64,000 nucleotides of DNA from Ostrea edulis (lineage: Eukaryota). A program made the translations under genes and the position numbers. The notes under the pieces were generated by a model. The model saw only the letters and a program-made list of their open reading frames with translations. It ran no database searches and was not told the DNA's origin. Below are positions 8,437 to 51,846 of the stretch, piece after piece; position 1 is the stretch's first letter; every line of letters starts with the position of its first letter. The stretch spans positions 22,878,001 through 22,942,000 of the forward strand of contig NC_079172.1 in the NCBI RefSeq assembly GCF_947568905.1, given 5' to 3'.

Positions 8437-8988
8437 CGAGTTATCATATATTTACACATATGAAATACGGTTTCCCTTATTGTGGCAAAACCCGACACCC
8501 CGGGGGCCATGATTTGAACAAACTTGAATTTGAACTATGTCAGGAAACTTCGATGTAAATTTGAACTCTTCTGGCTCAATGGTTCTTGAGAAGATTTTTC
8601 CTATATAAATACATATAAAATGTGGTTTCCCCTAGTGTGGCCCCACCCGACCCCCAGGGGCAATGATATGAACAAACTGGAATCTGCATTATGTCAGGAA
8701 GCTTCCATGTAAAGTTGAACTCTTCTGGCTCAATGGTTCTTGAGAAAAATTTTCCTATATACACACATATAAAATATGGTTTCCCCATGTGTGGCCCCAC
8801 CCGACCCCCAGGGGCCATGATATGAACTGGAATCTGCATTATGTAAGGAAGCTTCCATGTAAAGTTGAACTCTTCTGGCTTAATGGTTCTTGAGAAGATT
8901 TTAAAAGATTTTTCCTATATATAAATACATATAAAATATGGTTTCCCCTATTGTGGCGCCATCCGACCCCTGGGGGACATGATATGAA
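8406..8988 (-). mobile_element. Non-autonomous Helentron-type element with oyster approx. 166-bp (Cg170/HindIII-like) satellite array, 3' part (left of the Polinton)
   Basis: End aacaagaggcccatgggccacatcgctcacc, then about 3.5 tandem approx. 160-bp units (tggttcttgagaagattttt...gatatgaacaaactggaatc) resembling the known oyster satellite family (recognised from memory). Confidence 0.75.
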
Positions 8989-9333
8989 AGTAGTATAACG
9001 CGTCCCGATAGGGAGTTCAACTGAGTGCACTTTTTATGCAAATGAGGTCAAGTAAGGGCGTTTTTGATTGGTCAAGCGGTGTTGGGGTCAACGGAGTGCA
9101 CTAGGACGGGGTCAACCCCAGCAGGGGTTGTAGAGCGGGTGAATAGACTGGGCTATGGCCGCTGGTCTATGATGCGGTACTTTCGCTTTGAGTTCCTGGA
9201 ATGAGTTCCTGCTATTTTTCTGAAAATCCAGTGAAATCCTGTGTATTAAATCTAAAAGAATAACAGTGTATTAAATCTAAAAGAATAACACAAGGTTTTA
9301 AGTTGACATGTTTATTAAAGAACAATAGTACAA
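8989..9333 (+). repeat. Left terminal inverted repeat (345 bp)
   Basis: 8989-9146 is the exact reverse complement of 29226-29383; the inner part matches with patches of divergence; contains a 2 x 25-bp tandem at 9241-9290. Confidence 0.95.
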
Positions 9334-9432
9334 TCCCCAGAGGTGGCACGGTCCCTAGTTTTACCCAGCGCTGTCTACAGGTAATATATATATAAAGCGG
9401 CGCGCGGTGCATTGGGTGTCACTTTCGACATC

Positions 9433-12400
9433 ATGTCAGACAAGTTACCTACTGGACTTCCACGGAGTTATATTGAACAGCGATTGAGATTTTTGAATGA
9501 TCAGCTGAACAGACAACGGCAGCGTGAATTACAACTTCGCAGAGAGAATCAACGACGACTACAGTATTTACAGCGGGGAGGGGGGAAAAAGAAACTCATT
9601 TCGGATTATTACAAAATTCAACTGGAACGAGGACGTCAATCACGGAAATTTAAAGTCAAGGAAAATGTCTACAATGTTGCTTTCAAACCTATTCCAGAGA
9701 AAGAAAATACAACCTTCATTCGTCGGCTCTTCCGGGATATGTTAAAAAATGTGAAACAGGAAATGCAGTGCAATCCCAATGATTATCTACGTTTAAATAT
9801 TCGGCACCCGTCTCTGGATTCAGCTATTTGGTACGAATTTACGCAGTCCAATCAGCTCAACGAGGACAAAATTCTGAACAAAATAGAATCCGTCCAGCAA
9901 TCTAAAAAGGAATTCCTAATCACCGACGGGGCAGTGCAGATGGATTTTTTCCATGTTAAATATCCACAAGGCAGCGGGTGCACTAAGAAAAAACATCTAC
10001 ACATGGATAAGGAGAAATTCAAAAACTCCAAGAGAGCGATCGTTCGCATTCAAAATCCTGAGGATTCTCTCTGCTTGTCCCGGGCTATTGTGGTAGCACG
10101 TCTACACAGCCAGAAATCAAACGACCCGGCATGGGAAACGAAATGGTTACGCATGAGAAAAGGGGATTTCAAAACGCTCGACCAGAAACGAGAAGCGATA
10201 GCCTTGATGGAACAAGCTGGGTGTGTTATGAACCACCCGTGTGGGCCGCGTGAATGGGAGCAATTACAGCACGCGCTCGCCCCACAGTATCGATTGAAAA
10301 TATTTCAATTCAAAACGAATACAACTCGTTTACGACTGGAACCTATTTACAAAGGACCGGGGTACGGGACTTGTTTGAATATCCTGCTGGATAACGAGCA
10401 TTACGATGCCATTGTGTCTATGGCTGGAGTGACGGAAAACGGATACTATTGCGATTATTGCGATGTTGGTTACAGTCACATTGAAGATCATCGGACCGTC
10501 TGTCCTCATCGATGCTCATTTTGTTTAGCCGATACCCCCTGTACCCCGGACGGGACTCAGACGAATTGCCCTCATTGTAAGGGATTTTTCAGAAATGCAG
10601 CTTGTTACCAGACCCACTTGAAACCTTACAGCAGTAATACAACAACCACGGTCTGCAGTTTAATGGGGCGGTGTAACCAGTGTCAGAAATGGATGTCCAA
10701 GCAATTATTAAAACGCCACGCGTGTGGGGGTCAAACCGAATGCCGCATCTGTCACAAAGTCGTCACCATGCCTCATCACTGCTTTGTACAGACGAAACCC
10801 AAACCTAAGAAAGAAAAAGAAGAAGAAGAGGAGTTGAAAATATACATTTATTACGATTTCGAATGCAGTCAGGAAAACGGTATTCACATCCCCAATTTAT
10901 GCGTGGCAGAACGTGTGTGTCAACATTGCGACAGTGTGGATATCGACAAGCCCTGTTCTCATTGTGAAGGATTCGGATCACAACGCCGCTTCCTATTTCA
11001 AGGCCCCGACACGTTAAAACAGTTTATGGAATGGCTCTTACAGAGCGAGACCGATGAGCAAGGCCATGTGGAACTCAAACACGATGAAGCCACCATCATT
11101 GCCCACAATTTCAAAGGATACGATGGGCAGTTTATTTTGAATTACCTGGTGCACACGGCGTGTATCAAACCCACCGTCATCCTGAACGGGAGTAAAATCT
11201 TATCCATGCAAGTCTTGGGGTTGAGATTCATCGATTCTTACAACTTTCTACCCTTTGCTCTTGCCAAGATGCCCTCTGCTTTCGGATTAACGGAATTGAA
11301 AAAAGGCTATTTCCCGCACTTTTTCAACACGACAGAGAACCAGCAGTATGTGGGTCCTTACCCGGCCGCTCATTTCTACAATCCTGACGATATGTCCACC
11401 GCCAATCGTGAAGCCTTCTATACTTGGTACCATCAACAAGAGGGCAAAGTCTTTGATTTCCAGAAAGAATTCTTAGCTTACTGCATCTCGGACGTGGATA
11501 TTTTACGCCGCTGTTGTGCCCATTTCAAATCCACCCTGTTTGATCTGGTGGAAGTAGACCCCTTTCAAGAATCCATCACGTTTGCCAGCACGGCTAATTT
11601 AGCCTACCGACGAGGATTCATGACACAGGACACCATCGCCATCATTCCTAATATGGGCTACCGGCCAGCACGACGATATTCAGCTAAAGCTTGCCGATGG
11701 CTCGCCTGGTTAGAACATCAACATCACTGCATACGACATGCTAGAAATGGGGGTGAAGTCACGCTTGGACCCTATACAGTAGATGGGTATGATGAGGAAT
11801 CCCGTATCGTGTACGAATTCTATGGCTGTTACTGGCACGGCTGTCCCACCTGTTACCCGAATCTGTTGACTGACATGCATCCTCATCGTGTTCAGCATAC
11901 GTATCAAGACCTCTACCTGGACACCTTAAAACGAGCCAGTGCTTTAGAAGACCAAGGCTATACAGTCGTGAGCATATGGGAACACGAGTTTGATCGTCAG
12001 ACCCAGACCAATGCCGACTTACAGGAATTTTTACAAGGAGTCGATATACAAGATCCTTTGAATCCCCGTGACGCTTTGTACGGAGGCCGGACCAATGCTA
12101 CACGACTGTATTGTGAGGAGGGTGACATGCGATACGTGGATGTCTGTTCCCTGTACCCGTACGTGTTGAAATACAAGCCATTTCCCGTCGACCATCCCCA
12201 AGTCATCACCAGCCATTTCACCGATGTCAGAGACTATTTCGGGCTCATTCGTTGTCGTGTCCTCCCACCCCGAGAGCTGTATCACCCCGTATTACCTTAC
12301 AAGACCGGGGGCAAATTACTCTTTCCCTTATGCCGCACCTGTGCGGAACAGCGCAACTTAGGACCCGACGAGCGGTGCCAGCACACCGATTCTGAACGCA

Positions 12401-20521: not shown

Positions 20522-21925
20522 ATGATGCACCGAGAATCTTGCGCTTGTGGCACCAGCAGTTTAGAACTGTTTAAAGTGCCCCCGACCAACGTCACTTTAG
20601 AAGATTCGAAATGGATGGAATATTACCCCATTTCCAGTACCCTCAACTCGGATACGGCTCCGATTGAATTTGAAATCAAAGGACAAGGAGATGAATATCT
20701 GGATTTATCCCAAACTTATCTCCAGATGGTATGTAAATTCACGAAAGCCAATGGAACGAATCTCGCAGGAGGCAATTCGACCTCCACCCCCGTGAATAAC
20801 ATTCTCCATTCCTTGTTCAGTGAAATCGATGTCAGTCTCAATGGAAAAGTCATTACCCCGGGGACGGATACTTATCCCTACAAAGCGTATCTGGAGAAAT
20901 TGTTGTCTTATGCACCCAAGACTCTGGAAACCCAGATGAGAGCCTGTAGCTTGTGGGAAAAAGATACGGCAGGACATATGGATGAGGTCAAATTAGAAGC
21001 TCTGGCTCAAACTCCTGTGGAATTTGCAGTAGTGTCTAACAAAGTCAACATCGCGGCCGTCATCCCGACTCCCGAGTATCCGGATGATTCCAAGAATGTA
21101 GGGTTGAGAAAACGTCACGAGAAGATTACAGACAGTAAGGAGATCGTGTTGATGGATCGATTACATCTGGATTTGTTTGAGCAAGAGAAATGTCTCCCTA
21201 ATGGCTTGGATGTCCGTCTCCGATTCAATCGCGCTCGACCCCAGTTCTACATGATGACCGCTGCCGGGAGTAGTGGGAAAGTGGCCATTCAAAGTATGAT
21301 CTTGTGGGTGAGGAAAGTCAAACCTGTGCCGAGTATCATTAATCTCATCAATCAGCAACTGAGTACTCAAACGGCGAAATATCCATTGAGACGAGTGGAA
21401 GTGAAAACCTTCACCATTCCTAGTGGCACCCAATCTAAAATCACCGATCATCTGTTTCAAGGACAGATGCCTAAACTGATCGTGTTGGGCTTTGTGGACA
21501 ATGCGGCTTTTAATGGGGATAATACCAGAAACCCCTTTCATTTCCAAAATGAGAGAGTCAAGAAATTAGAAATCAGTATCAATGGAGAAATGATGGAAAC
21601 CCGACCTTTGGAACCTAATTTCACCGACGATCAGTACCTGAGATCGTATTTGAGTCTGTACAAAGGCTTGGGAAAATTAGGTCAGGACTGGGCTCCGGAC
21701 ATTACCCTAGAAGAGTATAAAAACGGTTACACCCTCTGGTGTGTGGATTTCACGAAAGATCAAGAAGCCCAGACGGATAAATTTCATCTCATACAGACGG
21801 GGAACTTGAGAGTGGAAGTGCAATTTGCCGCCAACGTAGCCAGGACCTTAAACTGTGTGGTGTATGCCGTGTTCGACAATCTGCTAGAAATCAACAAACA
21901 ACGAGAAGTCAGCATCGATTACTAA
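20522..21925 (+). CDS. Major capsid protein (double jelly-roll, hexon-like)
   Basis: [10 protein letters not shown]...EYYP...[21 protein letters not shown] and [12 protein letters not shown] motifs of the Polinton MCP; 467 aa. Confidence 0.93.
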
Positions 21926-21932
21926 GAGAGAG

Positions 21933-22430
21933 ATGGATACTCAGCAATTGAGAGATGTTTTACAACGAGATTTAGGACCGGCGTTTGCCGGTGTGTATCC
22001 TCGAGATGTCATACCTGAGCTGTTACCTCATCACAAAGCCATCGTGGTGAATACAGACCCTCACGATCGCCCTGGAGCGCATTGGGTCTGTTTGTATTTG
22101 AGTAGCCCTACCGTCGAATATTTTGATTCTTACGGATTACCCCCCAGCCATAAAGACATCCAAGACTTTATTCAACGCCACGGAGAGACTTGGATTCATA
22201 ACACCCATTGTTATCAAGATTTGAATACGGATGTCTGTGGACAATACTGTGTGTATTTTTTACATCAACGCCATCGCCATAGAAGCACCGTACGAGAATG
22301 GTTACTTCCCTGGAAAGGCACGGCCTTACAACGCGATCGTTTTGTGGCGGATTGGTTTAAAGAGACCTTCCGAAAACCGAGAACCCATCAAGGACAAACT
22401 TGTCAATGTCAAAGACTGAATGTATTGTAA
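21933..22430 (+). CDS. Maturation cysteine protease (adenain/Ulp1-like)
   Basis: VNTD...GAHW, EYFDSYG, YQDLNTDVCGQYC give H, D, Q and C catalytic residues. Confidence 0.94.
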   Translation: MDTQQLRDVLQRDLGPAFAGVYPRDVIPELLPHHKAIVVNTDPHDRPGAHWVCLYLSSPTVEYFDSYGLPPSHKDIQDFIQRHGETWIHNTHCYQDLNTDVCGQYCVYFLHQRHRHRSTVREWLLPWKGTALQRDRFVADWFKETFRKPRTHQGQTCQCQRLNVL

Positions 22431-22515
22431 ACTATGTTATTGTTATTGTTTATAGTTGGAGTTTAATAAAACGTTGGAAAAAAAAAAAAAATTCTTGTCA
22501 TTGTAATCAACCATG

Positions 22516-22556
22516 TCTTTTCAAAAAGAATGGGTAGCCCTGAAAAGGGCTGTTTT
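22516..22556 (-). terminator. Histone-mRNA-type 3' stem-loop plus downstream element (copy 1)
   Basis: Minus strand AAAAC AGCCCTTTTCAGGGCT ACCCA TTCTTTTT GAAAAGA; stem-loop 22536-22551, downstream of ORF 22644-22940. Confidence 0.8.
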
Positions 22557-22643
22557 CTTTCTCTCTCTCTGTTCTTGGTCTTTTCTCTTCTTCTTCTCTC
22601 TTCTCCTTCTTCTCCTTCTCTTCTTCTTTTCTTCTCGGTCCCC

Positions 22644-22940
22644 TCACTGTCTGTTCTTCTTCTTCTTTCTTCTCTTCTTTTTCTGCTCCTCCGGGGGTTG
22701 CTCGTGGTCAAACACAAACACAGGCAACCACCCGTGTTTAAAAAACAATCTCCCCGGAGGCCGTTGCACCACTTCTAACTCTGCGTCCCAGTTTTCTTCT
22801 GGCGGGGGCAGATCCTGGCTCATGGGCGGTGGGGGAAGAGCCTCCCGTGAGGCCGGCGGGGTAATCTCTGCCTCCCAATCCTCCTCCCATTTGATACAAT
22901 AATCATTCACTGTAGGGTCTGGTCCTACTCTACGGCTCAT
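22644..22940 (-). CDS. Hypothetical 98-aa protein: acidic/Pro-rich with basic NLS-like tail
   Basis: EEDWEAEI and EENWDAEL repeats, LPPPP, KKKRRKKKK; has a dedicated upstream promoter and 3' stem-loop. Confidence 0.6.
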   Translation of the reverse strand: MSRRVGPDPTVNDYCIKWEEDWEAEITPPASREALPPPPMSQDLPPPEENWDAELEVVQRPPGRLFFKHGWLPVFVFDHEQPPEEQKKKRRKKKKNRQ

Positions 22941-22984
22941 GGTTCTGGTTCCTTTAAAAAATCGGAATGCCCGATTTTTGACGT

Positions 22985-23033
22985 TGCGCTCGGTTTAAAA
23001 AGGCGAGAGCGCGGACGTCCTCGAAAACATCCC
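22985..23033 (-). promoter_or_regulatory. Duplicated H4/HiNF-P-like promoter element, copy 1
   Basis: Minus strand GGGATGTTTTCGAGGACGTCCGCGCT...TTTAAACCGAGCGCA; 25/26 identical to 25044-25069. Confidence 0.65.
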
Positions 23034-23047
23034 CTACCTCAGATGGC

Positions 23048-23089
23048 TGACGTCATGTTGATGACTCATCAAAAAACACTATATAAATA
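23048..23089 (+). promoter_or_regulatory. CRE + AP-1 + TATA promoter
   Basis: TGACGTCA 23048-23055, TGACTCA 23062-23068, TATATAAATA 23080-23089, ATG at 23117. Confidence 0.7.
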
Positions 23090-23116
23090 GGTCACTTGTT
23101 ACCATTTTTCTCAATC

Positions 23117-23518
23117 ATGTCGTTTGAACGGTACGCGGATGATGAAAATGATGTACTAGTGTGTGGGTATTGCCGAGGACCTTGGAGCACTTGTGGGTGT
23201 TTTCATTATAAAAAAGAAAACATCCTGGCCAAACAGAAGTGGATAGAGAGATTGGCAGAGCTGACGTTTTATCCCTTTGTCTATAAATGTTGTGGTCACA
23301 CTAGAGAACCCTGGCTAGAGTGTAAGTGTCCGCAGCATTGTACCATCACCCCTGAAGAAGAAATAGCGCATAAGGACTGTACCTGTGAGATCTGTCAGGA
23401 GTTTAGAGAGCGCTGGACTCAGAGAAAGTTTGATCCCCGGGTGTTTCAACATTGTCCTTACAGTCAAGAACCCCGGTCAACGTGTACCTGTGAGACCTGT
23501 CAACCAGCATGTCGGTGA
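23117..23518 (+). CDS. Cys-rich putative zinc-binding protein (133 aa)
   Basis: Three copies of C-x-[YH]-x-[RQ]-[GE]-P-[WR]-x-x-C-x-C plus two CTCExC motifs. Confidence 0.7.
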   Translation: MSFERYADDENDVLVCGYCRGPWSTCGCFHYKKENILAKQKWIERLAELTFYPFVYKCCGHTREPWLECKCPQHCTITPEEEIAHKDCTCEICQEFRERWTQRKFDPRVFQHCPYSQEPRSTCTCETCQPACR

Positions 23519-24006
23519 CGGATCTACGAGGAGATGTATTATCTCTACCTTGGGTGGATGCTATTGTACAACAATGTAACTGTTTAACGGTGAAACCTCA
23601 TGGATTAAGTCAACGTATTGCCGAACGATTTCCTTGGGCTAATCTGTATGCGACCCGACAACCTTTAGGACGGAGAAATTTAGCTATAGCAGCGGATCGA
23701 GGAATACCGGGTACTGTGTGTATTATGCCTCATTCTACTCATCCTGATGTGATCTGTTTGTTAGCGCAATGGGATTACGGGAGAGGCACTCAACGCTTAC
23801 CCCTGTATGCCGATACCCCCGAACAACGTGAACTTTGGTTTCAACAATGTTTACAGGAATTAGGCACTTTGTCTTACCAGACTTTAGCGTTTCCTTATCG
23901 TATTGGATGTGGATTAGCCGGAGGCAATTGGACTCATTATAGACAATGGATTTGTGACTTTGCTTATCAGTATCATAAACATGTGTACATTGTCAAGAAA
24001 ATGTAA
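23509..24006 (+). CDS. Macrodomain (ADP-ribose binding/hydrolase; Poa1p/TARG1/DarG-like class)
   Basis: GDVL...AIVQQCNC...GLSQRIAERFP...PGTV...LLAQWDYG...LAFPYRIGCGLAGGNW. Confidence 0.9.
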   Translation: MSVTDLRGDVLSLPWVDAIVQQCNCLTVKPHGLSQRIAERFPWANLYATRQPLGRRNLAIAADRGIPGTVCIMPHSTHPDVICLLAQWDYGRGTQRLPLYADTPEQRELWFQQCLQELGTLSYQTLAFPYRIGCGLAGGNWTHYRQWICDFAYQYHKHVYIVKKM

Positions 24007-24098
24007 CTTTATTATAGCTTTATTCTAGCTATTACTTGTGTTAATAAAACTTTTTTAAAACAAACTTGTGTGTTTCTTGATTTTTGCCATAAAAAGTG

Positions 24099-24139
24099 TC
24101 TTTTCAAAAAAGTTGGTGGCCCTGAAAAGGGCCGTTTGG
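24099..24139 (-). terminator. Histone-mRNA-type 3' stem-loop plus downstream element (copy 2, perfect consensus)
   Basis: Minus strand CCAAAC GGCCCTTTTCAGGGCC ACCAA CTTTTTT GAAAAGA; stem-loop 24118-24133, 23 nt after the TGA of ORF 24157-24948. Confidence 0.9.
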
Positions 24140-24156
24140 TCCTAAGGACCGACTTT

Positions 24157-24948
24157 TCATTCCCTGCTTCCGGTAAACCGGCATAACGGGCACCGTCCCC
24201 GGGTGTGTCGCCGCTCCTGTAACTCTTCCACGCACGAGCAGCAAGCTGGGCGCTGCCCACATCCCCTGCACGTAATTCCAGAGTGTACCCTGTCTTGCCA
24301 GCAGACAGGACACTTAAACCAGATGGGAACCGCCCTATCTGCCCAGCCAGGGACAGTCATAGGGTGGTTCCTCGGGGGATGAGTTGCCACCGGTGCGTGG
24401 GTTGGTCTCGGTGGTGGTGGAGTCCTCCCTGCAAACCGGATGGTAGGTGGTGGGGGTCTTGCAGGGGCTGCTGGTCTCGGTGGTGATGCTGTGTCTGCCA
24501 CCAACAGCGACGGACTCTGGGCTGGACTGGGAGGTGGTGCGGGGGACGGTGACCGCGGTGAATACTCCACCGGTGACGCTGGTGAGTCGCTCATCGGCAC
24601 CGGGCTGTATTCCACTGGTGCCGATGGGATCGCTGGTGGTGGTGTTGTAGGCGTCGCCGGTGAGTAAGGTGGTGGTGGTGAGGGTGGCTGTGGGGCCCGT
24701 CGGCGCGGTCTCGTACCCGTGGAGATTCGAGCGGTGCGGCGGCGGGGTGCCCTCCCTTCATACTCGGCCCGCACCCGGCAGATGATCTCACGGACCCCAC
24801 TCTGGTCGAAAGGGGAGAAGGTGCTCAGGTCGTTCTCAGAACGCACGACCCAATTCTCCCCTACCCGTTCCTCAGCCACCACTACCAGCCGGTACCGGAA
24901 TCCAGGCAAGGTCTGAAAATTGTAGAGCGGGTCTCTTCTTGTAGCCAT
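24157..24948 (-). CDS. Pro/Ser-rich protein with C-terminal RING-like finger (263 aa)
   Basis: CPVC-x10-CRGCGQRPACCSC-x13-CPLC; PPPPY; YSPATPT, YSPVPMS, YSPRSPS; first ATG 24948. Confidence 0.8.
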   Translation of the reverse strand: MATRRDPLYNFQTLPGFRYRLVVVAEERVGENWVVRSENDLSTFSPFDQSGVREIICRVRAEYEGRAPRRRTARISTGTRPRRRAPQPPSPPPPYSPATPTTPPPAIPSAPVEYSPVPMSDSPASPVEYSPRSPSPAPPPSPAQSPSLLVADTASPPRPAAPARPPPPTIRFAGRTPPPPRPTHAPVATHPPRNHPMTVPGWADRAVPIWFKCPVCWQDRVHSGITCRGCGQRPACCSCVEELQERRHTRGRCPLCRFTGSRE

Positions 24949-25022
24949 TCTTCTTTCTTCTTTAAAATCCTTCAAAAATCTTCTATAACTGTGCTGGGTC
25001 ACCAGTGAAGCGAACTGGCGAG

Positions 25023-25069
25023 TGCGCCGGTATATATCGGGAAAGCGCGGACCTCCTCGAAAACATCCC
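25023..25069 (-). promoter_or_regulatory. Duplicated H4/HiNF-P-like promoter element, copy 2
   Basis: Minus strand GGGATGTTTTCGAGGAGGTCCGCGCTTTCCCGATATATACCGGCGCA, with TCACT Inr-like motif 29 nt after the TATA. Confidence 0.7.
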
Positions 25070-25503
25070 TCGCTTCGGAGACGAAGCCAAGATGGTGGCC
25101 GTCAAAATGGCGGATTTGTGCTTTCGAGTAGAGAGATTTTTCTCATTGTCTTTTTCTAGACATTCGATATCTGTGCAAGGTAGATTTAATCTGATAGATT
25201 CTGAGACGGCGAATGCGTTAAACTTATTTTTATTTTGCTACGTCGCATAGTTTTCAAAGAAACAGAGGTTAAAGAGGTCGAGTCGAGGTTCAATGTTTCT
25301 TCACCCCTCTTTAAAAATTTATTTCTCGACCATGTACATCCCTAACAACATCTCATAAGGTCTATTCGATAGAAAACACCTTATTTGATTCGATTTTCAC
25401 TCTACCTTTAGGATTTTCTGGATTCCTCAACAAATAAACCCTTCTCTGAGAGACTCAACCAAACACAGCTTTCGTGTAAACAATTTTATTCATGTCACAT
25501 ATT

Positions 25504-25722
25504 TCAAATACATAACTCCCACACACAACACCAATTCACATGTCTTTTTAAAATAGGGTCCAACATTTTTTCCATTTCTCGAATCCTGCGTTGAAATCGA
25601 TATCGATCAGCGGCTACAGTCATCCAGATACTTGTCCGGTCTTCTTCGGGTAACAGATGCACTTCATTTTGATCCAGATTAAAAGTCACACGTTTAACTT
25701 GACGTACATCTCTCGAAGACAT
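25504..25722 (-). CDS. PPP1R15/GADD34-like (ICP34.5/DP71L-type) PP1-recruiting protein, 72 aa
   Basis: KRVTF (RVxF) then EVHLL...W...AADRYRFQRRIREMEKMLDPIL, matching the GADD34/DP71L W...ARDRxRFxRRI...L signature; ATG 25722. Confidence 0.88.
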   Translation of the reverse strand: MSSRDVRQVKRVTFNLDQNEVHLLPEEDRTSIWMTVAADRYRFQRRIREMEKMLDPILKRHVNWCCVWELCI

Positions 25723-25991
25723 CGTAGTCTGATTTTCTCGATTTCTGCTCTGTCTGTGAGTCGAATTCGTTTCAATTCCTGGCCCATTAAATGAATCAGT
25801 ACTAAGGCTTGCGGGGTGATCCGGTTCTCGATCAAATACTGACAGAGACATGGATAGTCCTTTAAGCTGATGGGAAATAATTCTTCTCGCATATAGTGTA
25901 ACACAAATTCAAACTGCCCAGAATGAATGTCTGTGAGATAATCCAATACATAAACTATCGCTTTCTCTGTGATGTGGTCACTGCTGGCCAT
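25686..25991 (-). CDS. Helical paralogue 4 of tandem array (101 aa)
   Basis: MASSD start and FPISLKDY...LVLIHLMGQELK...IEKI...CLREMY, shared with its neighbours. Confidence 0.8.
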   Translation of the reverse strand: MASSDHITEKAIVYVLDYLTDIHSGQFEFVLHYMREELFPISLKDYPCLCQYLIENRITPQALVLIHLMGQELKRIRLTDRAEIEKIRLRCLREMYVKLNV

Positions 25992-26325
25992 CCTCCGGGA
26001 ATAAATGAAATGAATTAAGTTCTTCACACTTTATGTATACTTCTCGAAGCCAGTCCTTGGTGATACTTTCAATCTCGGCGGTTTTTTCAGGCATGCGTTT
26101 CTTGAATTCCTCCCCCGCGACATAAATTAACATCAACCCCGCATCGTTATAGAGATTGATGTACACATGGTTCCGTAGATCTGTATATTCGTCCAGAGTC
26201 ATTGGAAACACCCCCGCTATCAGATAATTTTTAACAGCTTGAAACACCGTATCGTCTTGCATTTTCTCCACCCATTCTAATGCATGGTTATGCGCTTTTT
26301 CTGCGATGTTGTCACTGCTGGCCAT
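25978..26325 (-). CDS. Helical paralogue 3 of tandem array (115 aa)
   Basis: MASSD...FPMTLDEY...GLMLIYVAGEEFKKRMPE...IESI...WLREVY. Confidence 0.8.
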   Translation of the reverse strand: MASSDNIAEKAHNHALEWVEKMQDDTVFQAVKNYLIAGVFPMTLDEYTDLRNHVYINLYNDAGLMLIYVAGEEFKKRMPEKTAEIESITKDWLREVYIKCEELNSFHLFPEDGQQ

Positions 26326-26353
26326 CCTCCAGGAATAAAGGAAAAGAAAACGG

Positions 26354-26707
26354 TTAGGTTTTTTTATACACCTTTTCCAGCCAGTGATCGGTAATCGCTA
26401 CAATCGCCCCAGTCTTCTCAGGTTCCCGTCGTCTAAATTCTTGGTCCATGTTATAAATCATGATCAATCCAGACTCTCTGTTCAGGTTGTCGGCTATATG
26501 CTTGCAAACGCTGGAATATTCATATAAGGTCATAGGAAATTCCCAAAAGATCAACAACTTCATGGCGAATTTATATCTCAACGGCTGTTTTTCTTTCCAG
26601 TCCTTGATACACTGTAATGCAGCGCTACGAGCGTTGTTCACCGATTCTTTGTAGTCCTCGAAATGCTGTAATACAGCGGTAAGAACGTTGTTGGTCAATT
26701 CAGCCAT
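26354..26707 (-). CDS. Helical paralogue 2 of tandem array (117 aa)
   Basis: FPMTLYEY...IADNL...GLIMIY...EFRRREPE...WLEKVY; first ATG 26707. Confidence 0.8.
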   Translation of the reverse strand: MAELTNNVLTAVLQHFEDYKESVNNARSAALQCIKDWKEKQPLRYKFAMKLLIFWEFPMTLYEYSSVCKHIADNLNRESGLIMIYNMDQEFRRREPEKTGAIVAITDHWLEKVYKKT

Positions 26708-26744
26708 GATGATCAAAATGAAAAAATTCTAAAACGTTCTTGTT

Positions 26745-27077
26745 TTATAACAGGGCAGCCATTCCTTTCATACGAATCAGTTCCACGAATCCTTTTTGTA
26801 GACAATCGCGTAAGATCCGATCAATGTCACTCATCTGGTCTGGAAGATTCTGTTTCAATTCCTCAGCATACAAATAAATCATGAGTAAACGTCCCGTATT
26901 GGTATTCTCCGCTAATGAATCAGCAATCCGTTGAAAACTATGTACATTTCTGACCTCCGGTGACATCTGTTGTACAAATTGACGAGCATTTTGAATGTGA
27001 GGATTATGTAAGGCCACGTTCATACATTGTAGTACATAACTATATCCATTTATTCTCGTAGTAGCACTGCCCCCCAT
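26745..27077 (-). CDS. Helical paralogue 1 of tandem array (110 aa), possible Bcl-2-fold protein
   Basis: SFQRIADSLAENTNTGRLLMIYLYAEEL resembles BH1 (FxxVxxELFxDGxNWGRIVxxxxF); TATAAATA on the minus strand at 27107-27114. Confidence 0.65.
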   Translation of the reverse strand: MGGSATTRINGYSYVLQCMNVALHNPHIQNARQFVQQMSPEVRNVHSFQRIADSLAENTNTGRLLMIYLYAEELKQNLPDQMSDIDRILRDCLQKGFVELIRMKGMAALL

Positions 27078-27128
27078 AGTAAATAACGAACGTTCAGAAA
27101 ACACCTGTATTTATAGGTAAAGGTTATG

Positions 27129-27181
27129 CATCACGTGATCAAACACCTGCACCACGTGATCAAGCACCTGTACGTCAGCTG
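27129..27181. promoter_or_regulatory. E-box cluster (2 x 21-bp direct repeat) in a divergent promoter
   Basis: catcacgtgatcaaacacctg 27129-27149, caccacgtgatcaagcacctg 27150-27170, then TACGTCAGCTG. Confidence 0.6.
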
Positions 27182-27216
27182 GTTTTTCTACAGTCATTCT
27201 TGTCTGACCTTCAGTC

Positions 27217-27723
27217 ATGGATACACGGAGAATTTTAAGAGCGAGACGCCGCGGCCAGGGAATACAACCAGTGGAGAATTTAACCATAGTAGAAGATTAT
27301 GTAGACGAGATGGAGATCTGGGCCAATTTAGTACAGAGATGTCGCCATCGATTACGCTGGGGCCGATCTAAAAATTGGTGTTTTGACTATGTATTGCGGT
27401 CACATGAAACAGTGGAGGATATTTACCTGCGTTTAAGTGACATGTACCTGAAAAATTCCCCCCTCATACAGTACATGATTTACCAGTTTTACACGTTATT
27501 GAACGGCACTCAAAAAGTATCGGGATTTATTCGACTGGAGAAACCACGTTACCGGAGAAGTGTATGGGTATTGTTTTGGGATGCACACTGGATGTGGGAA
27601 ACCGTCGAAGAGATACGTTTCCCCGGGAGAAGAGCTCGACAATTAGTACAACACATTATATCCGAAGATCATGACTTACACGTGTATATAGAAGAACCTG
27701 CGTATGAAGCCGGCCATTTTTAA
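27217..27723 (+). CDS. Hypothetical 168-aa protein resembling a catalytically dead CRESS-virus HUH Rep endonuclease domain
   Basis: SKNWCFDY (motif I-like), YMIYQ...GTQKVSGFIRL (motif II-like, no His), DAHW; no motif III Tyr. Confidence 0.55.
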   Translation: MDTRRILRARRRGQGIQPVENLTIVEDYVDEMEIWANLVQRCRHRLRWGRSKNWCFDYVLRSHETVEDIYLRLSDMYLKNSPLIQYMIYQFYTLLNGTQKVSGFIRLEKPRYRRSVWVLFWDAHWMWETVEEIRFPGRRARQLVQHIISEDHDLHVYIEEPAYEAGHF

Positions 27724-27742
27724 AAATAAAAACTTCATGCAC

Positions 27743-27758
27743 AGCCCTTTTTAGGGCT
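27743..27758 (+). terminator. Variant histone-type stem-loop (copy 3)
   Basis: AC AGCCCTTTTTAGGGCT AC, 19 nt after the stop of ORF 27217-27723; no clear purine-rich downstream element. Confidence 0.55.
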
Positions 27759-27811
27759 ACTTTAAACACCAATATAAGTTCCATTCCACTAAAGTCAATG
27801 TGTACCAATGG

Positions 27812-27883
27812 GCACTAGCACGCGCTGGTCGCGAGAAACCGGCTTTTCAAGTTCAATTAGTGCACTAGCACGCGCTGGTCGCG
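27812..27883 (+). promoter_or_regulatory. 22-bp direct repeat (50-bp period) upstream of the zinc-knuckle gene
   Basis: gcactagcacgcgctggtcgcg at 27812-27833 and 27862-27883, each followed by gaaaccgg(c/t)ttttc. Confidence 0.6.
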
Positions 27884-28043
27884 CGATGTTCTAGCTGAAA
27901 CCGGTTTTTCCAGAAAAAGATGATGCAACCACGTGCTCCCCACGTGCCCCTCACGAGACAGAATAGTCTAGACATTTTGCTGGCTATAAAAGCGGAGCCC
28001 CAGTGTCAGTCCTCATTCGATCTTCAATCACCTTCCAGAAGAC

Positions 28044-28961
28044 ATGGCTCAGAAACAACTAGAATTTGTGGACAAAGCTCAGAAGAAAATAGATCAGCTG
28101 GTACAGAAGGAGATGGGGCCACAAAAAGACTACATTGAACTGAAGAAAGCTAAGAGTGACGATCAGAAGACTGAACTGGGGAAGACCTCGAACTTCTTGC
28201 TCACGTCTCCAGACTACGTTGCTCAAAGAAGAAGAGAAGAGAAGAAGATGGCCCAGACCTCGAACCAGACCACGAGCTTCAATCTCACGCCTTCAGACCA
28301 CGTTGCTCGACAAGTGAAGATGGCCCAGACCTCGGATTACCTCCCTAGCCAGAATCCGACAGACCCGGGATTAGGCTTCTATTTTCCCGATTCACAGGAC
28401 GCTACGGGACTGGAGATGGGCTTATACGATAAACCCCCCTTCGGCGGAGAAGATTCCCCCATGAGCAGGACCGATTTCGCCATCATTACCACGACACTCG
28501 ACGGGATCGTTAACCGCATTAATGTGCTGAGTAATGAGATTGGAAATCATACCACAATCCTACTGAAGAAGCTGGAAGACCTGACTTCTAAAAAACCTAG
28601 GAAGGAATACACTCCAGATTACACTGCTAACCCGTGCTACACGTGTGGAGAAACAGGACATTGGTCGCCGGATTGCCCACAGAAAACAGATTATCCGCAG
28701 ACCAGTAAGAAATCGTGGTCGGCAGATTCTCAACAGACCAGCAAGAAAACCAAACAAAAGGATCCTTGCTTCAAATGCGGAAAAATAGGACACTGGATTA
28801 GTGAGTGTCCAGAAGAACAAGCGGAGATAGATGCGATGATTGGACCCGTACCTGGCTCAAAACCCCCTGTGAAGAGAGAATACACACCGTTAGAGATGTG
28901 GAATCCACCCGCACCTACTGAAGAACGGCCAAAAAAGAAGAAGAAACTCAGCAGAAAGTAA
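28044..28961 (+). CDS. Coiled-coil plus double CCHC zinc-knuckle protein with C-terminal NLS (305 aa)
   Basis: CYTCGETGHWSPDC and CFKCGKIGHWISEC; RPKKKKKLSRK; TATA 27985, Inr 28013, AATAAA 29052. Confidence 0.85.
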   Translation: MAQKQLEFVDKAQKKIDQLVQKEMGPQKDYIELKKAKSDDQKTELGKTSNFLLTSPDYVAQRRREEKKMAQTSNQTTSFNLTPSDHVARQVKMAQTSDYLPSQNPTDPGLGFYFPDSQDATGLEMGLYDKPPFGGEDSPMSRTDFAIITTTLDGIVNRINVLSNEIGNHTTILLKKLEDLTSKKPRKEYTPDYTANPCYTCGETGHWSPDCPQKTDYPQTSKKSWSADSQQTSKKTKQKDPCFKCGKIGHWISECPEEQAEIDAMIGPVPGSKPPVKREYTPLEMWNPPAPTEERPKKKKKLSRK

Positions 28962-29034
28962 TGGACTGTGCTTGAACTGTTATGCTTATTGAACTGTTTT
29001 TATGCTTATTGAATTGTTTTGCATTGTTCTATGC

Positions 29035-29383
29035 TTGTACCATTGTTCTTTAATAAACATGTCAACTTAAAACCTTGTGTTATTCTTTTAGATTTAATAC
29101 ACTGTTATTCTTTTAGATTTAATACACAGGATTTCACTGGATTTTATACCGATTTTCAGAAAAATAGCTTTTCCAGGAACTCAAAGCGAAAGTACCGCAT
29201 GCTAAAATTAGGACCATAGGCCAGCCTATTCACCCGCTCTACAACCCCTGCTGGGGTTGACCCCGTCCTAGTGCACTCCGTTGACCCCAACACCGCTTGA
29301 CCAATCAAAAACGCCCTTACTTGACCTCATTTGCATAAAAAGTGCACTCAGTTGAACTCCCTATCGGGACGCGTTATACTACT
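29035..29383 (-). repeat. Right terminal inverted repeat (349 bp)
   Basis: Reverse complement of 8989-9333. Confidence 0.95.
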
Positions 29384-29810
29384 TATGAACAAACTTGAAT
29401 CTCCATTATGTCAGCAAACTTCCACGTAAATTTCAACTATACTGGTACAGTGGTTCATGAGATTTTATTAAATGACCCCACCCTATTTTTACACTTTTGT
29501 GATTATCTCCCATTTGAAGAGAACCTGGCCCTTAATTTGAACAATTTTGAATTCCCTTCAACTAAGGATGATTTGCATTAAGTTTGAATGAAATTGGCTT
29601 ACTGGTTCTGGAGAAGATTTTTAAAAATTTTCAGTGTATTTTTACCGATTTGCTATTATCTCCCCTTGGATAAGAGGGTTGGCCCTCATTTGAACAATTT
29701 TGAATCCCCTTCACCCAAGGATGATTTGTGCCAACATTGGTTAAAATTGGCCCTATGGTTTTGGAGAAGTTGAAAATGTAAATGTTTAACAGACAGACGA
29801 CGGACAAAAA

Positions 29811-43777: not shown

Positions 43778-45344
43778 ATGAAGACAGAATCCAAAATTCT
43801 GACACCTAAAGTAAAACCACCAAGTGCTTCACCTCAGAGAAATAGCAATACACCTTCAAGTAAAAGCCCAAACAAAAGAAATTCATTGATTGTTGCCAAG
43901 TCTCCTGGGCTGAATGCTGTTGCAACACCAAAGGCCAAACCTCGGTCTCCTTCCCCAAGGAAAACACCAGCTCCTGTTATGAAGACACCTGTTGCCACTG
44001 TAACACCAACAAAATCCCCTGTTAAAAAGTTCTCCACTCCTAAGTCTCAGGTAAATTCAAGAAGTGTATCACCTAAAGCTGTGACCCCTGTTGTCTCCAC
44101 AACTCCTGCAAATAAACAGAAGACCACTCCAAAAGCTGAGAGGAAGTCCAGGAGTACCTCTCCTAAGGCTAAGACACCTAGTGCATCTCCAAAAGTCAAG
44201 ACCCCAGCGGCTTCCCGAAGCATGTCACCCAAAACTAGTATTCCAGTAGTTTCTACTTCAGCAGATGATGAAGTCTTGACAACTCCGAAATCGGGAAGGA
44301 AGTCAAGAAATACCACTCCAAAACCCAAGTCTTCAAAAAGTTCATCTCCGAAAGCTAAATCTCCCATAGCCAAATCTCCAAAAGCTAAAACACCCAGAAG
44401 TGCATCTCCAAAGGCGAAGACTCCCAGAAGTGCATCTCCACAGGCGAAGACTCCAAGAAGTGTATCGCCAAAAGTTGCTACACCTAGAGTTGCGTCTCCT
44501 ACAGCCAAGACTCCCAGGAGTGTATCTCCAAAAGTTGCTACACCTAGAGTTGCATCTCCAAAGGCCAAGACTCCCAGAAGTGTATCTCCAAAGGCCAAGA
44601 CTCCCAGGAGTGTAACTCCAAAAATTGCTACATCTAGAGTTGCATCTCCAAAGGCCAAGACTCCCAGAAGTGTATCTCCAAAGGCCAAGACTCCCAGAAG
44701 TGCATCTCCAAAGGCCAAAACACCTGTAGTGTCTACCCCTGTAAAACCAGCTGAAGAAGTTAAGAAAAGTCCTGCATTGGAAAGGACATCAAAGAGCAAA
44801 TCTCCAAAAGGCAAGACGCCTATAAGTGCATCTAAAGCTAAATCTCCCAAGGGCCAAACACCAAGAAGTGCATCTCCCAAGGCCAAAATTCCTGTCTCAC
44901 CAAGTCCTACCCAGATTGGTGGTGTGGTAACAACTCCTAAGGCTAAGACACCTGTGTCTTCTACCACTCCTGTGAAACCTGTTAAGGAACCCATGTCAAC
45001 ACCTAAGTCAGACAGACGGTCAAGAAGCACATCACCAAAAGCTATGACTCCCAATCTGTCACCAAATGTGAAGACACCTGAGGTCTTAGCAATTAAAGAG
45101 AAAATCTTGTCCACACCGAAGTCTGGCAGAAAGTCTAGAAGTGTATCTCCAAAATCAAACACAGTTGCAAACACCCCAAAATCTGCACAGAAGGCTGAAT
45201 CACCAAAGTCAAAGAGTCCATCTCCCAAGGTAAAGACACCAGCTACTCCAAAATTTACCAGTTCAGGGTTGAAGTCCAGAACACCATCCCCCAAGGCTGT
45301 TACCACAACTGAATCCCCCTTAACCAGTGGATGGACACCAGTCG
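43778..45344 (+). CDS. MKI67: Ki-67 coding exon 4 (SPK/TPK-rich, 10-aa tandem repeats)
   Basis: 1567-bp exon, phase 0 to 1, repeats SPKAKTPRS[AV]. Confidence 0.85.
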
Positions 45345-46606
45345 GTAAGTCATTACGACAAATTTACTCAGTCATATTTTCAGTACAAAATTATTGATCA
45401 TTGACAAGAATTAAAAAGTTATTTTTATTTGTTGTTGTAATTCATTATCTATTGTGTGAAATTTGAAAATTATTTTCGTAGTTTAGAGGTATTTTGTATA
45501 TGAATTGTTGAAGAGAAGAGTGGGAGTAGATGTTTAAGAATAATGATCATATTCATTCTTGTTATTTGTAGTAAACAAAAAGAAACTGGAAAGGAGGGTA
45601 AGTGGAAAATAACGATAATTCCATGGTGATTATGATAATTTTAAAGATGTAAATTAGTGCTGTCTATGAATAGTTGATATAAATGAATACCTATCATTTT
45701 GTCCAAATGAGCTTGAATGTAAGTTTTTATTGTCAGTCAGACTATGAAAGAGGCCAGTCTTCATTTTACACTAATCTTGGTTGAGATTCAGCTTGGCTGA
45801 ATATTTAGACTGACGCCTTCACTGAATCTCAGAGCAGTTCTTCATAATTCATGTCTGGAAATTTACTTCCAGTTTCGGCTGGTTCTAGCTATTAATGTGC
45901 ACTTAGATTGCACTGCTGTTTGCTTCAGATATTAAGTGGTTTGACTATTAAACTAACTATCACTATTAATCTTGCATTGCTTACCGTGTAAGTATGAAAA
46001 TTCCAAAATGAAAACTGTCCCTAAATTTTCCGTTCAGATGAAGACTTCCACCGCACAATATTTTGTATTCTGAAATTGAAAAGTTCCAATTGTCTGTTTT
46101 ATCAAATTACTGATACATTGTATTGATCTCCACATACCTACTCGTACATTGCTAATTTAAGAACAAACTATGGAAACTCTTCAGTTTCGGGAGATAAAGT
46201 ATTGTGCCATCCAAATATTCAGCCAGGCCGAATCTCAGCTGAGATTACATTTTACACAACTCTGGATTGGAAATACTTTCACTTAATTAAGCTATTTTAA
46301 ATTTGAATGTACCCATTACTTTCCAGTCTTTGCCAGTGGGAAATCCTATAATTGCTGCAGGTAAGACTATTTTAAACTTGAGATAAATTGAAAAATAAAA
46401 ACAGAAGAATTGCTTTTGGCATCATGTAAATTTTAATTGAAAATGGTCAAATTGCATGATAAATGGCACATTTACAGCTACAAGAAAAAAGCTGAGCATA
46501 AGGATTGAATCATCTCTGTTGCAGTTCTCCAAATTCCATTAATTAACACATATTAATGGATTTTATGTGGTGTTTCTTCTTCATTATCTGGGTGTGTTTT
46601 TTCCAG

Positions 46607-48093
46607 CATTACCTACATCACATGCAAGTTCTGGAAAGAAAAGAAAGTCTACAGAAAGTTTAGAATCCAGGTCTAAGAGGGCAAGAGTGTCATTTGGACC
46701 CAAACTCAGCCCTGAACACTTCTTAAAGACCCTGCCTCCATCCACACCCGTCAGGAAGGGAGCAACACCCAAACGAATGGCTTCTAATTCAGATTTGAAA
46801 CCACTGCTGAAAAGGAAATCTGTCGTCACTGTCCCAAAATCTCCAATCAAAGAAGAGAGTCCACAGAAAGCCAGAAGTTCTCAAAAATCTCCAAAGGCTG
46901 GTCGTTCTCCAAGAAGTCCAAATGATAAAAAATCTCCACAACAGAAAACTAAGAGCCCGAGTGCTTCACCCAAGACAGCTCAGAACAAGGTACCAGAGAT
47001 GACTACAACCACTTCTAGAAGTCCGGTTCAAAGTAGATCTCCAGCAAAATCTGCTACACCCACATCATCACTCAGAACTCCAATGAACAAATTGCCTAAA
47101 GCTAAGCCTTCAACACCCAGAAGTGCCTCTCCTAAGACACCAAGTAACAAATCTCAAGTTATAGCAGTATCGCCAGTCGCAACTCCAGCAAAGCCTTCAC
47201 CCAAGTCTCCAACTCGAAGCCAATCTCCTAAAACAAAAGCAACACCTAAATCTACTCCGAAAAAATCGTCACCAACTAAGGCTAAGTCTCCTATATCCAA
47301 AATATCTCCTAATAGTTTAAAGAAGGATAAATCAATGGATGAGTCCTTTGGACTAGATGGTCTGTTTCAGACACCCAATTTGGTTACAAGTACTCCTGCT
47401 GCTGGCAGTAAAAAGAAGAGAAAATCAGCTGTGTTGAATTCAACTCGGTCAAAGAAAAATATAGAGACCAAGCGAAGAACAAGTACAGGGAATCTTGGAG
47501 GTGTTAAGAGGCTGCTAAAGACTCCAAAGAGGTTGCCAGACACCAGCTTCACTGGAATAGCTGCCCTGATGAAGACCCCAACAGCAGTAACAGCAAAAAA
47601 GACCACTCCAAAAATTGTATCGATGAAGACTCCAGCAGACATTAGCTACACTGGAATTGCTACCATGATGAAGACCCCCAAAACAGCTTCAGCAAAGAAA
47701 ACACCCACGATGAAGACCCCCAAAACAGCATCAGCAAAGAAAACACCAAAAGTTAAATCTGCAAAGCCTTCAGCAGACACGAGCTACAGTGGCATTGCAG
47801 ACATGATGGCTACACCTAAACAAAAACCAACACCTACAAGGAAAAACTCCCCTAAAGTTGTTGTTTCCCCAGCTGTACAGAAAATTAATAATCCCATTGC
47901 AGACCTAAGGAAAGCTGTAGCCATTCGTGCTATTCATGGGAAAAATGCAACTCCAAAATTGTTAAAGATGGCTCCTGCATCATGGGCTGATGTAGTAAAA
48001 AAAGGTGTGGCAAAGAAAGTTCTTACCCCACAGGCCAAGAGAGTAATGCATGGGAAGAGAGCTGCACAAAGTGCCAAGAAGAATCGAAGGAAG
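46607..48093 (+). CDS. MKI67: Ki-67 coding exon 5 (PP1-binding domain, Ki-67 motifs, SWADVVK)
   Basis: KRARVSFGPKLSPEHF..TLPPSTPVRKGATP matches KRRRVSFGGHLRPELFDENLPPNTPLKRG; SWADVVK conserved. Confidence 0.92.
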
Positions 48094-48209
48094 GTTTGCA
48101 GAATATTTTCTAAAATTTTATAAATAATATTGAAATTATTTACCTTAAAAATTATGACAATGTTGTAAAATACATTTGTACTATGAATATTCATACCAAT
48201 GTATTTCAG

Positions 48210-49724: not shown

Positions 49725-50909
49725 GTATGTTTGCTTCTTGTTGGGCCAATTCAACTTAATTGATAGATTATCATCCCCGCCCGCCCCGAAAAAATTTTAT
49801 TATGCGAAACTTGCAATTTCCGGAAAATTTTCATGTCCGACTCTGGTATTTGCTTTTCTTATTTACATTTCCAGTATAACAATGTGAGAAGCCATGTGAA
49901 GAAAATACTAATTAAATATGGTTTTCTTAATTTCTTGCATTCTTACGGGCATAAATCTTGAAAAAGTTTGGTATCTTTTAAAGCTTAACCTGGAATTTGT
50001 TGAAAATAAGCAAAGATTGATATCCATCTGGCATTAATAATACACTTCTGTTGACAAAAACTCATTTATCATTAACCCAGACTAACTCTACCTCACCTGA
50101 ATACACAACCATTTTGAATGTAGTGTTGTTTTCATTGTTATATACGTATGTATTCCTACATGCCATTTCAAAATTGTTAAAGCTTTTTGATGAGAGAAAC
50201 TATTTGTTTTACTATTTGAAAACATAATTAAATGATAAGAAATGAATCTTATAATTCTTTTCTTGACGGCGGTATCATATAGGTAAAATTAGGTGGAAAC
50301 TTGCGCTATGAACATTGATGAAGTTTTCCATCTTATTTTCCCTATGATACTGCCATCAATAAAAGAATTTCATGATTCATTTTTTTAAATCATTAAATGT
50401 AATTTATTATACCATACCCTAAGCCTTACATAGTAAACATACTTTGATGCAAGTAGTTCAAAGTATGCTATTTTCATAACAAAAGAGAACTTGTGAGAGC
50501 CTGTGTTTACAATTGTAAAATACATTTGAGTTATGACACCTTTCACATATTGCATGCACATGTAGGAGCTATACTTTGGGCACGCAGTGATTGGGATGAG
50601 CATGCGCCATGGTCACATTGAATTAAAAAATGGCGCATAGAATATTGAAAACACTGTGCCGTTGTGGCACATATCGTCAATATACCTAGTTTGAGCTTTT
50701 CCCCACTTACTCCGTAAATCTTAAGCCTGACAAAGGGCAAACTTTCTTTGATTTTCGCCTGAATGATATGCCAGTACTGGCAATAGACACTGTTGGAGCA
50801 CAAGTAGACGACGCAGAAATGTCAAAACAAAAAATCACGATGAGAATCCTATTTTTTGCAAAACGTAAATTTAACACAAATATTGATACAACTAAAGTTA
50901 CCTATGGCA

Positions 50910-51332
50910 ATACAGTCTGTCAGCATAGTGTTTAGATTGATTTACTGATCTCTCATACAGTCTGTCAGCATAGTGTTTAGATTGATTTACTGATCTCTCA
51001 TACAGTCTGTCAGCATAGTGTTTAGATTAATTTACTGATCTCTCATACAGCCTGTCAGCATAGTGTTTAGATTGATTTACTGATCTCTCATACAGTCTGT
51101 CAGTATAGTGTTTAGATTGATTTACTGATCTCTCATACAGCCTGTCAGTATAGTGTTTAGATTGATTTACTGATCTCTCATACAGTCTGTCAGTATAGTG
51201 TTTAGATTGATTTACTGATCTCTCATACAGTCTGTCAGTATAGTGTTTAGATTAATTTACTGATCTCTCATACAGTCTGTCAGTATAGTGTTTAGATTGA
51301 TTTACTGATCTCTCATACAGTCTGTCAGCATA
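50910..51332. repeat. 45-bp tandem array, left part (about 9 units)
   Basis: Unit atagtgtttagattgatttactgatctctcatacagtctgtcag(t/c). Confidence 0.95.
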
Positions 51333-51846
51333 TAGTCCAGTCATTCTACGCCAGATTGTGCTGAACCTAGAACTAATTGCAACAGAAATGTTTTTATGTT
51401 TTTTGGATAGCTTACAGTGTCCTTTATGCTATATTAAAAATCGCCATCAATTGAAATTTGCATTAGATAGATTTTTGAGGTAAAAATCACGGATTTTGAA
51501 GAAAAATCGCAAAAAACTGGAAATCATAAATACAAAGCTTTAGTCTGAAAAATAGTCCATTTTAGTTATTTGAAAACTAAATACTGTTAGACAGAAATGT
51601 GATTTCCAACAGCTAAGATTGATAATTAACTTTCATAAACATGACAAAGCAAGTTCTATTTTGTAAGCCTCTTAGATAACGTTTAACAAAGTTATCATAA
51701 TGTTTTGATTCACAGCTATCTTTTACATTTCATCTTTATTCCTATATCTTACTGTTTTTAATATTATGAATCATCGGAATCTTCATTTGGGCTAAAATCG
51801 TACACGCAAGTTGTGCCTCGACACTCGGTACATGCTATTGAGCATT

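Follow-up and report, generated by a model that had tools for sequence, protein, structure and literature searches.

A stretch of 64,000 nucleotides of the Ostrea edulis genome (NCBI RefSeq assembly GCF_947568905.1, contig NC_079172.1, positions 22,878,001 to 22,942,000 of the forward strand; hereafter the window, numbered from its first letter) contains an adintovirus-like Maverick/Polinton element, two accessory genes of which, here called gene 1 and gene 2, carry the same 26-nt block a few nucleotides upstream of a TATA-like box. We hold with fair confidence that the block acts as a promoter element, and its more specific interpretation as a proximal promoter module common to two accessory genes with unrelated protein products is one that we favor with moderate confidence. 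A bolder proposal, advanced here tentatively, is that the element would have built full mimics of replication-dependent histone genes, consisting of a HINFP/NPAT-type promoter and an SLBP/U7-type stem-loop, around two non-histone genes.

The window was searched for the block with the 26-mer given in the preliminary description of this DNA, with the variable base written as S. This search returned two copies (Table 1), which are direct repeats on the plus strand and differ solely by G or C at 23017/25053, so that the original report of a block present at two sites with one mismatch was borne out. No third copy with up to three mismatches was found elsewhere in the 64-kb window, and none of 100 dinucleotide-preserving shuffles of the window produced a match. 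When the two loci were anchored at the block, identity was 25/26 inside it and fell to the random level across the 100-nt flanks (24% and 25%), with approximately ten further weakly similar bases at the upstream edge. Half-copies were also sought, and 8-10-mers shared with the rest of the window were no more frequent than chance predicts. The block is an island with sharp limits and not the visible portion of a longer duplication.

Genes 1 and 2 lie on the minus strand, antisense to the core genes of the element, and encode proteins that are unrelated to each other (BLASTP E = 48). Because the proteins are unrelated, the non-coding modules shared by these genes are not leftovers of a gene duplication; combined with the random identity of the flanks, the same result rules out gene duplication as the source of the block. 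The gene 1 protein has one homologue, equal to it in length, with 74% identity (68% when the full alignment is counted), and it matched no Pfam family and no PDB sequence. The gene 2 protein is 98% identical to O. edulis LOC130054518, the 90% cluster of which has 54 members, and 30 representative relatives were found at E ≤ 1e-3. The gene 2 sequence alone gave no significant match in Pfam or the PDB; its RING assignment was reached only by the family profile, which matched RING domains in the PDB (TRIM32, 2e-5; Mdm2, 1e-3). In an alignment of 21 members, seven Cys columns of the C-terminal Cys-rich domain are conserved in at least 90%. Neither gene product has a histone fold or a Pfam histone match, and the window as a whole contains no histone gene.

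The two copies of the block are oriented alike relative to the TATA-like boxes of the minus-strand genes. The spacer between block and box is nearly constant (6 nt for gene 1 and 7 nt for gene 2), while the distance between block and ATG varies (68 and 96 nt). Spacings of ten and nine nucleotides had been counted previously between GTCCGCG and the TATA-like hexamer, and these counts are correct in both copies. Copy 2 lies in a region downstream of an AATAAA-type signal belonging to the minus-strand gene before it. Different duplicated motifs are found at other promoters of the element, and on that basis motif-defined promoter classes seem to be an organizing principle of this element. For example, a tandem 18-mer with a CACGTG core (27132-27149 and 27153-27170) is located between a Bcl-2-like gene and the gene at 27217, and a tandem 22-mer (27812-27833 and 27862-27883) is located upstream of the TATAAAAG of a gene encoding a CCHC zinc-knuckle protein.

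The same two genes share a second module at their 3' ends. Scanning the whole window with the Rfam model Histone3 (RF00032; gathering score, 34 bits) identified a match behind each gene, and both consist of a stem-loop with a 6-bp stem, a 4-nt loop, and matching flanks. An identical 14-nt element with a purine run, a candidate for pairing with U7 snRNA, follows each stem-loop at a distance of 13-14 nt (22514-22527 and 24097-24110). The only other match was weak and lies right after the stop codon of a 168-residue gene (27217-27723) whose product has a faint Viral_Rep match (E 0.015). This gene was rejected as a third member of the class, as its promoter has other motifs and no block. The earlier statement that block and TATA-like box occur at exactly the two stem-loop genes thus holds for the two convincing stem-loops, with the gene of the weak third hit lacking the block. 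The two genes that carry the block are also those with RF00032 matches at E ≤ 3e-5, and by our own arithmetic the chance of this pairing among the approximately 22 open reading frames (ORFs) of the element is about 1/231. Gene 2 additionally has AATAAA signals approximately 90-110 nt beyond its stem-loop.

Further features were noted around these 3' ends. The 3' untranslated region of gene 1 contains a 92-nt tract of almost pure purine (GA-rich; 22552-22643, minus strand) ahead of the stem-loop, and a second small hairpin with a 5-bp stem and a 3-nt loop (24138-24150, minus strand) directly precedes the histone-type stem-loop of gene 2. The 3' modules of both genes face the AATAAA signals of convergent plus-strand genes, which encode the protease and a macro-like protein. 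A short stretch around these convergent signals is also shared (22466-22476 and 24042-24052, plus strand), making the two convergent termination regions alike as wholes.

The preliminary description had likened the block and its TATA-like box to the H4 promoter element recognized by HINFP, with a putatively equal 5-nt spacing to TTTTC in human H4 site II and a supposed resemblance to invertebrate H4 promoters. HiNF-P (HINFP, MIZF) is an H4-specific activator that recruits NPAT under cyclin E/CDK2 control (PMC5706932), and HINFP (= Mizf) genes are widespread in Metazoa (PMC2837044). The consensus used for comparison, RSGTCCGC ([A/G][C/G]GTCCGC), was taken as printed in a preprint (bioRxiv 10.1101/2024.09.18.613605) and is that preprint's paraphrase of JASPAR rather than the matrix itself. 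The 64 kb contain two exact matches, both of which are within the blocks and on the gene strand. The likeness therefore stands as regards the exact match and its placement inside the block, and fails as regards abundance, the octamer total not being above chance (2 versus 1.25 expected). As we read it, the argument for HINFP depends on the location of the octamer and not on its count in the window. The chance of a match in a given 26-mer is approximately 4e-4 (our own arithmetic), and the two matches count as one observation because the copies of the block represent a single duplicated event. From the end of the octamer to the TATA-like hexamer there are 9-10 nt in both copies. A position directly upstream of TATA is the canonical geometry of the H4 site. 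The E2F consensus given in the same preprint (TTTSSCGS) is absent from the upstream regions of both genes, and E2F was rejected on this ground as another possible cell-cycle factor. We accordingly name the host orthologue of HINFP only provisionally, as the best candidate among named factors that may bind the block.

Table 1. Coordinates of the blocks, the two genes, and associated features in the window
Feature	Position	Strand	Remarks
Block copy 1	23008..23033	-	Proposed proximal promoter module upstream of gene 1; -93..-68 from ATG
Block copy 2	25044..25069	-	Proposed proximal promoter module upstream of gene 2; -121..-96 from ATG
RSGTCCGC octamer in block 1	23011..23018	- (gene strand)	Exact match
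RSGTCCGC octamer in block 2	25047..25054	- (gene strand)	Exact match; differs from copy 1 solely at the degenerate S
TATA-like box, gene 1	22994..23001	-	T-run then AAA; 6 nt past block; ~55-60 nt before ATG at 22940
TATA box, gene 2	25031..25036	-	TATATA; 7 nt past block; ~85 nt before ATG at 24948
Gene 1	22644..22940	-	98-aa Pro-rich protein with acidic middle and Lys/Arg (basic) tail
Gene 2	24157..24948	-	263 aa; small N-terminal domain, Pro-rich linker, C-terminal RING-type zinc finger
Gene 1 stem-loop region	22511..22556	-	RF00032 32.0 bits, E 3e-5; stem-loop 22536-22551, 92 nt past stop
Gene 2 stem-loop region	24093..24138	-	RF00032 40.2 bits, E 2e-8, above gathering score; stem-loop 24118-24133, 23 nt past stop
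Third RF00032 match	27738..27784	+	Weak; 22.3 bits, E 0.11 window-wide; right after stop of 168-aa gene
TTTTAAAG motif, gene 1	22952..22959	-	-19..-12 from ATG; 3' splice acceptor implied by NCBI model
TTTTAAAG motif, gene 2	24960..24967	-	-19..-12 from ATG, same offset; candidate 3' splice acceptor
Maverick/Polinton (adintovirus-like) element	8989..29383	.	20,395 bp; contains both blocks and both genes

The alternative that survives best retains the promoter module and assigns its recognition to another host protein or to a protein of the element, the HINFP match being coincidental. Two candidate readers are encoded in the element itself, namely a 133-residue Cys-rich protein (23117-23518, plus strand) and the CCHC zinc-knuckle protein (28044-28961). 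The HINFP consensus accounts for 8 of the 26 conserved bases, and the other 18, including the TTTTCGAGGA part, lie outside it and are equally well kept, which favors recognition by a different factor, as does the chance-level number of octamers in the window. The core of copy 1 is moreover an 8-bp palindrome with an ACGT centre, a trait of other factor classes, although the core of copy 2 is not. Set against this, no other named motif common to both copies was found, the E2F consensus is absent upstream, and the pairing with a histone-type 3' end makes a factor of histone genes the more economical guess. We consider recognition by another factor a real possibility, though not the likelier one.

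Another alternative denies that the block is a promoter of the minus-strand genes and is best discussed together with splicing between them. In an NCBI gene model (P0003; LOC130055009, another copy), residues 1-196 of the gene 2 protein are followed by a piece of 23 residues and then by the gene 1 protein in full. When the pieces of this model were compared to the window one at a time, they were located at 24948-24286, 23437-23369, and 22952-22647, all on the minus strand, with the position of the first junction being approximate. The 23-residue piece is antisense to the plus-strand Cys-rich gene. In the window, the second intron of the model opens with GT (23382-23381) and closes with the AG of TTTTAAAG (22953), and the third piece begins directly past this AG, at 22952. 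A T-rich tract ending in AG at -12 is present in both genes. If the model represents a real RNA, gene 1 could be reached by splicing from the promoter of gene 2; the introns of such an isoform would include block 1 with its TATA-like box as well as the gene 2 stem-loop, and splicing would be in competition with cleavage at the first stem-loop.

On this alternative, the block might be an intronic regulator acting on RNA, through splicing or the choice of 3' end, or it might serve plus-strand transcription from the nearly symmetrical AT-rich boxes. The location of block 1 in the second intron of the model, together with the T-rich tract and AG at -12 in both genes, would fit the former; the readability of the AT-rich boxes on either strand and the presence of the plus-strand Cys-rich gene (23117) after copy 1 would fit the latter. 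The distance from block to acceptor is unequal, however (55 nt in gene 1 and 83 nt in gene 2), while that to the TATA-like box is fixed, and because of this difference the block is to be associated with the TATA-like box rather than the splice site. As for transcription of the plus strand, the Cys-rich gene past copy 1 is preceded by a canonical TATA box of its own at approximately 23082, and the sole plus-strand ORF beyond copy 2 is a short, unsupported one of 81 residues with a GTG start (25005-25250); minus-strand genes alone are therefore common to both copies. We regard both forms of this alternative as very improbable. In the interval that separates block 1 from the TATA box of the Cys-rich gene, a perfect 8-bp palindrome (TGACGTCA) and TGACTCA were observed at 23047-23070 (plus strand), and in view of these separate motifs the intergenic region of block 1 resembles a two-way promoter with its own motifs for each direction.

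An origin of the block as a relic without function, left by an old duplication or a short gene-conversion tract, is scarcely credible, since, although selection is unprovable from two copies alone, the block forms a 25/26 island amid flanks of random identity, adjoins unrelated coding sequences, has the same geometry relative to the TATA-like box in both copies, and is accompanied by a second module that genes 1 and 2 share at their 3' ends.

Several points weigh against a promoter module of the H4 type. With regard to the genes themselves, the TATA-like box of gene 1 is non-canonical, the gene 1 stem-loop falls just under the gathering score, and the NCBI model lets gene 1 be expressed without its own promoter, block 1 then being intronic. 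With regard to HINFP, the case consists of one degenerate 8-mer compared to a second-hand consensus, the motif was picked post hoc in the preliminary description after the sequence had been seen, and RSGTCCGC may not be the specificity of a mollusc HINFP. Octamer matches are also unenriched in the window, with two or more occurring in 34 of 100 shuffles.

In the mechanism that we propose, a sequence-specific factor would bind the block 6-7 nt upstream of the TATA-like box, and the block and the shared 3' module (stem-loop and downstream purine-rich element) would together define a two-gene expression class within the element. If the factor is the host orthologue of HINFP, transcription of genes 1 and 2 would follow the pattern of replication-dependent H4 genes, and their RNAs would end by cleavage past the stem-loop in place of polyadenylation. 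Production of the RING protein and its small partner would then be confined to the cells and times of host histone synthesis, meaning S phase and the proliferating cells of germline and embryo. Splicing past the first stem-loop would provide a further level of choice. Expression of genes 1 and 2 in S phase or at the histone locus body is a conjecture to which we attach limited weight.

The element that carries these genes is bounded by terminal inverted repeats of approximately 345 bp that are 95-99% identical (arms at 8988-9333 and 29035-29384) and by a 6-bp target-site duplication, TATGAA (8983-8988 and 29384-29389). It sits in a host satellite array of 154-bp units, which continues on either side (8447-8988 and 29392-29770). 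The core genes encode a protein-primed PolB (DNA_pol_B_2, 1.9e-55), an integrase (rve, 1.6e-11, plus Chromo), an A32-type ATPase (Pox_A32, 6e-7), and an adenain-like protease whose Peptidase_C5 match (3e-4) is just under the cut-off. Another core ORF of 467 residues (20522-21925), considered as a possible double jelly-roll major capsid protein, matched nothing in Pfam or among PDB sequences; its relatives, which are named 'F54H12.2-like' and number more than 500, occur in Ostrea, Saccostrea, Crassostrea/Magallana, and Mercenaria. The GC content of the element is 45% with a CpG observed/expected ratio of 0.92, compared to 36% and 0.49 in the flanks, and none of the listed ORFs of the element is broken. 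The element was probably inserted recently into the O. edulis genome.

The remaining cargo looks like a set of genes for host manipulation. It includes an IAP with BIR and RING domains (13431-13958, plus strand), a protein with a PP1 catalytic-subunit-binding (PP1c) motif (25504-25851, minus strand), a weakly Bcl-2-like protein (26745-27104, minus strand), and a weakly macro-domain-like protein (23509-24006, plus strand). In the host flank, long ORFs at 43778-48123 (plus strand) contain 30-nt coding repeats and a PP1_bind domain (E 1e-11) and are probably exons of a host gene. The host flank also contains two 45-bp tandem-repeat arrays (50775-51479 and 54049-55023) approximately 2.9 kb apart.

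Comparison to known systems places the two genes near, and outside, the H4 genes. As in the H4 site II/HINFP element, an exact match to the printed consensus lies approximately 10 nt upstream of a TATA-type box, and as in replication-dependent H4 genes, genes 1 and 2 are intronless in their simple form with an RNA that would end in a histone-type stem-loop. Unlike H4 genes, they are non-histone genes located in a mobile virus-like element. At both ends they at least look like replication-dependent H4 genes; they are not members of that family, because their products are not histones. The hairpin and downstream purine-rich element found in both genes resemble those of the replication-dependent histone 3' end (RF00032), from which gene 1 departs by a score below gathering and a stem-loop placed 92 nt past the stop codon behind a GA-rich tract, and gene 2 by its additional AATAAA signals past the stem-loop; for both, processing of the histone type is a prediction.

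Accessory genes described for adintoviruses and Mavericks include 'Oncoid' genes and homologues of Bcl-2 and IAP (PMC8502044). The present element resembles animal Mavericks/Polintons and adintoviruses in its core genes (PolB, integrase, ATPase, and protease) and in its IAP and Bcl-2-like cargo, and differs in that the promoter motif and the histone stem-loop are not described in that account. A literature search by co-occurring terms listed 15 papers that name both Mavericks and Polintons, and the term histone stem-loop occurs in none of them. Some promoters of DNA viruses borrow host cell-cycle factors for the timing of early genes. The arrangement described here is similar in that a small host-factor motif would lie by the TATA of regulatory genes, one of which encodes a RING protein, and is dissimilar in that both ends of the transcription unit would copy one class of host gene; we know of no described case of such copying. 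In our best reading, the pattern would be that of a virus-like element borrowing host regulatory signals.

Very little is known so far about the control of Maverick/Polinton genes. A motif-defined promoter class paired one-to-one with a histone-type RNA end would offer the concrete hypothesis that such an element ties part of its program to the DNA replication of its host. Should the HINFP interpretation fail, the block would still mark a co-regulated pair, consisting of a RING protein and its partner, in an element that is abundant in oysters. If the hypothesis is true, the two genes would provide a natural pair of test sequences for the requirements of H4-type promoters in molluscs, they would be among the very few cases of non-histone genes on the histone mRNA pathway, and the element would represent the first known case of a mobile element or virus taking over the whole pathway of histone gene expression.

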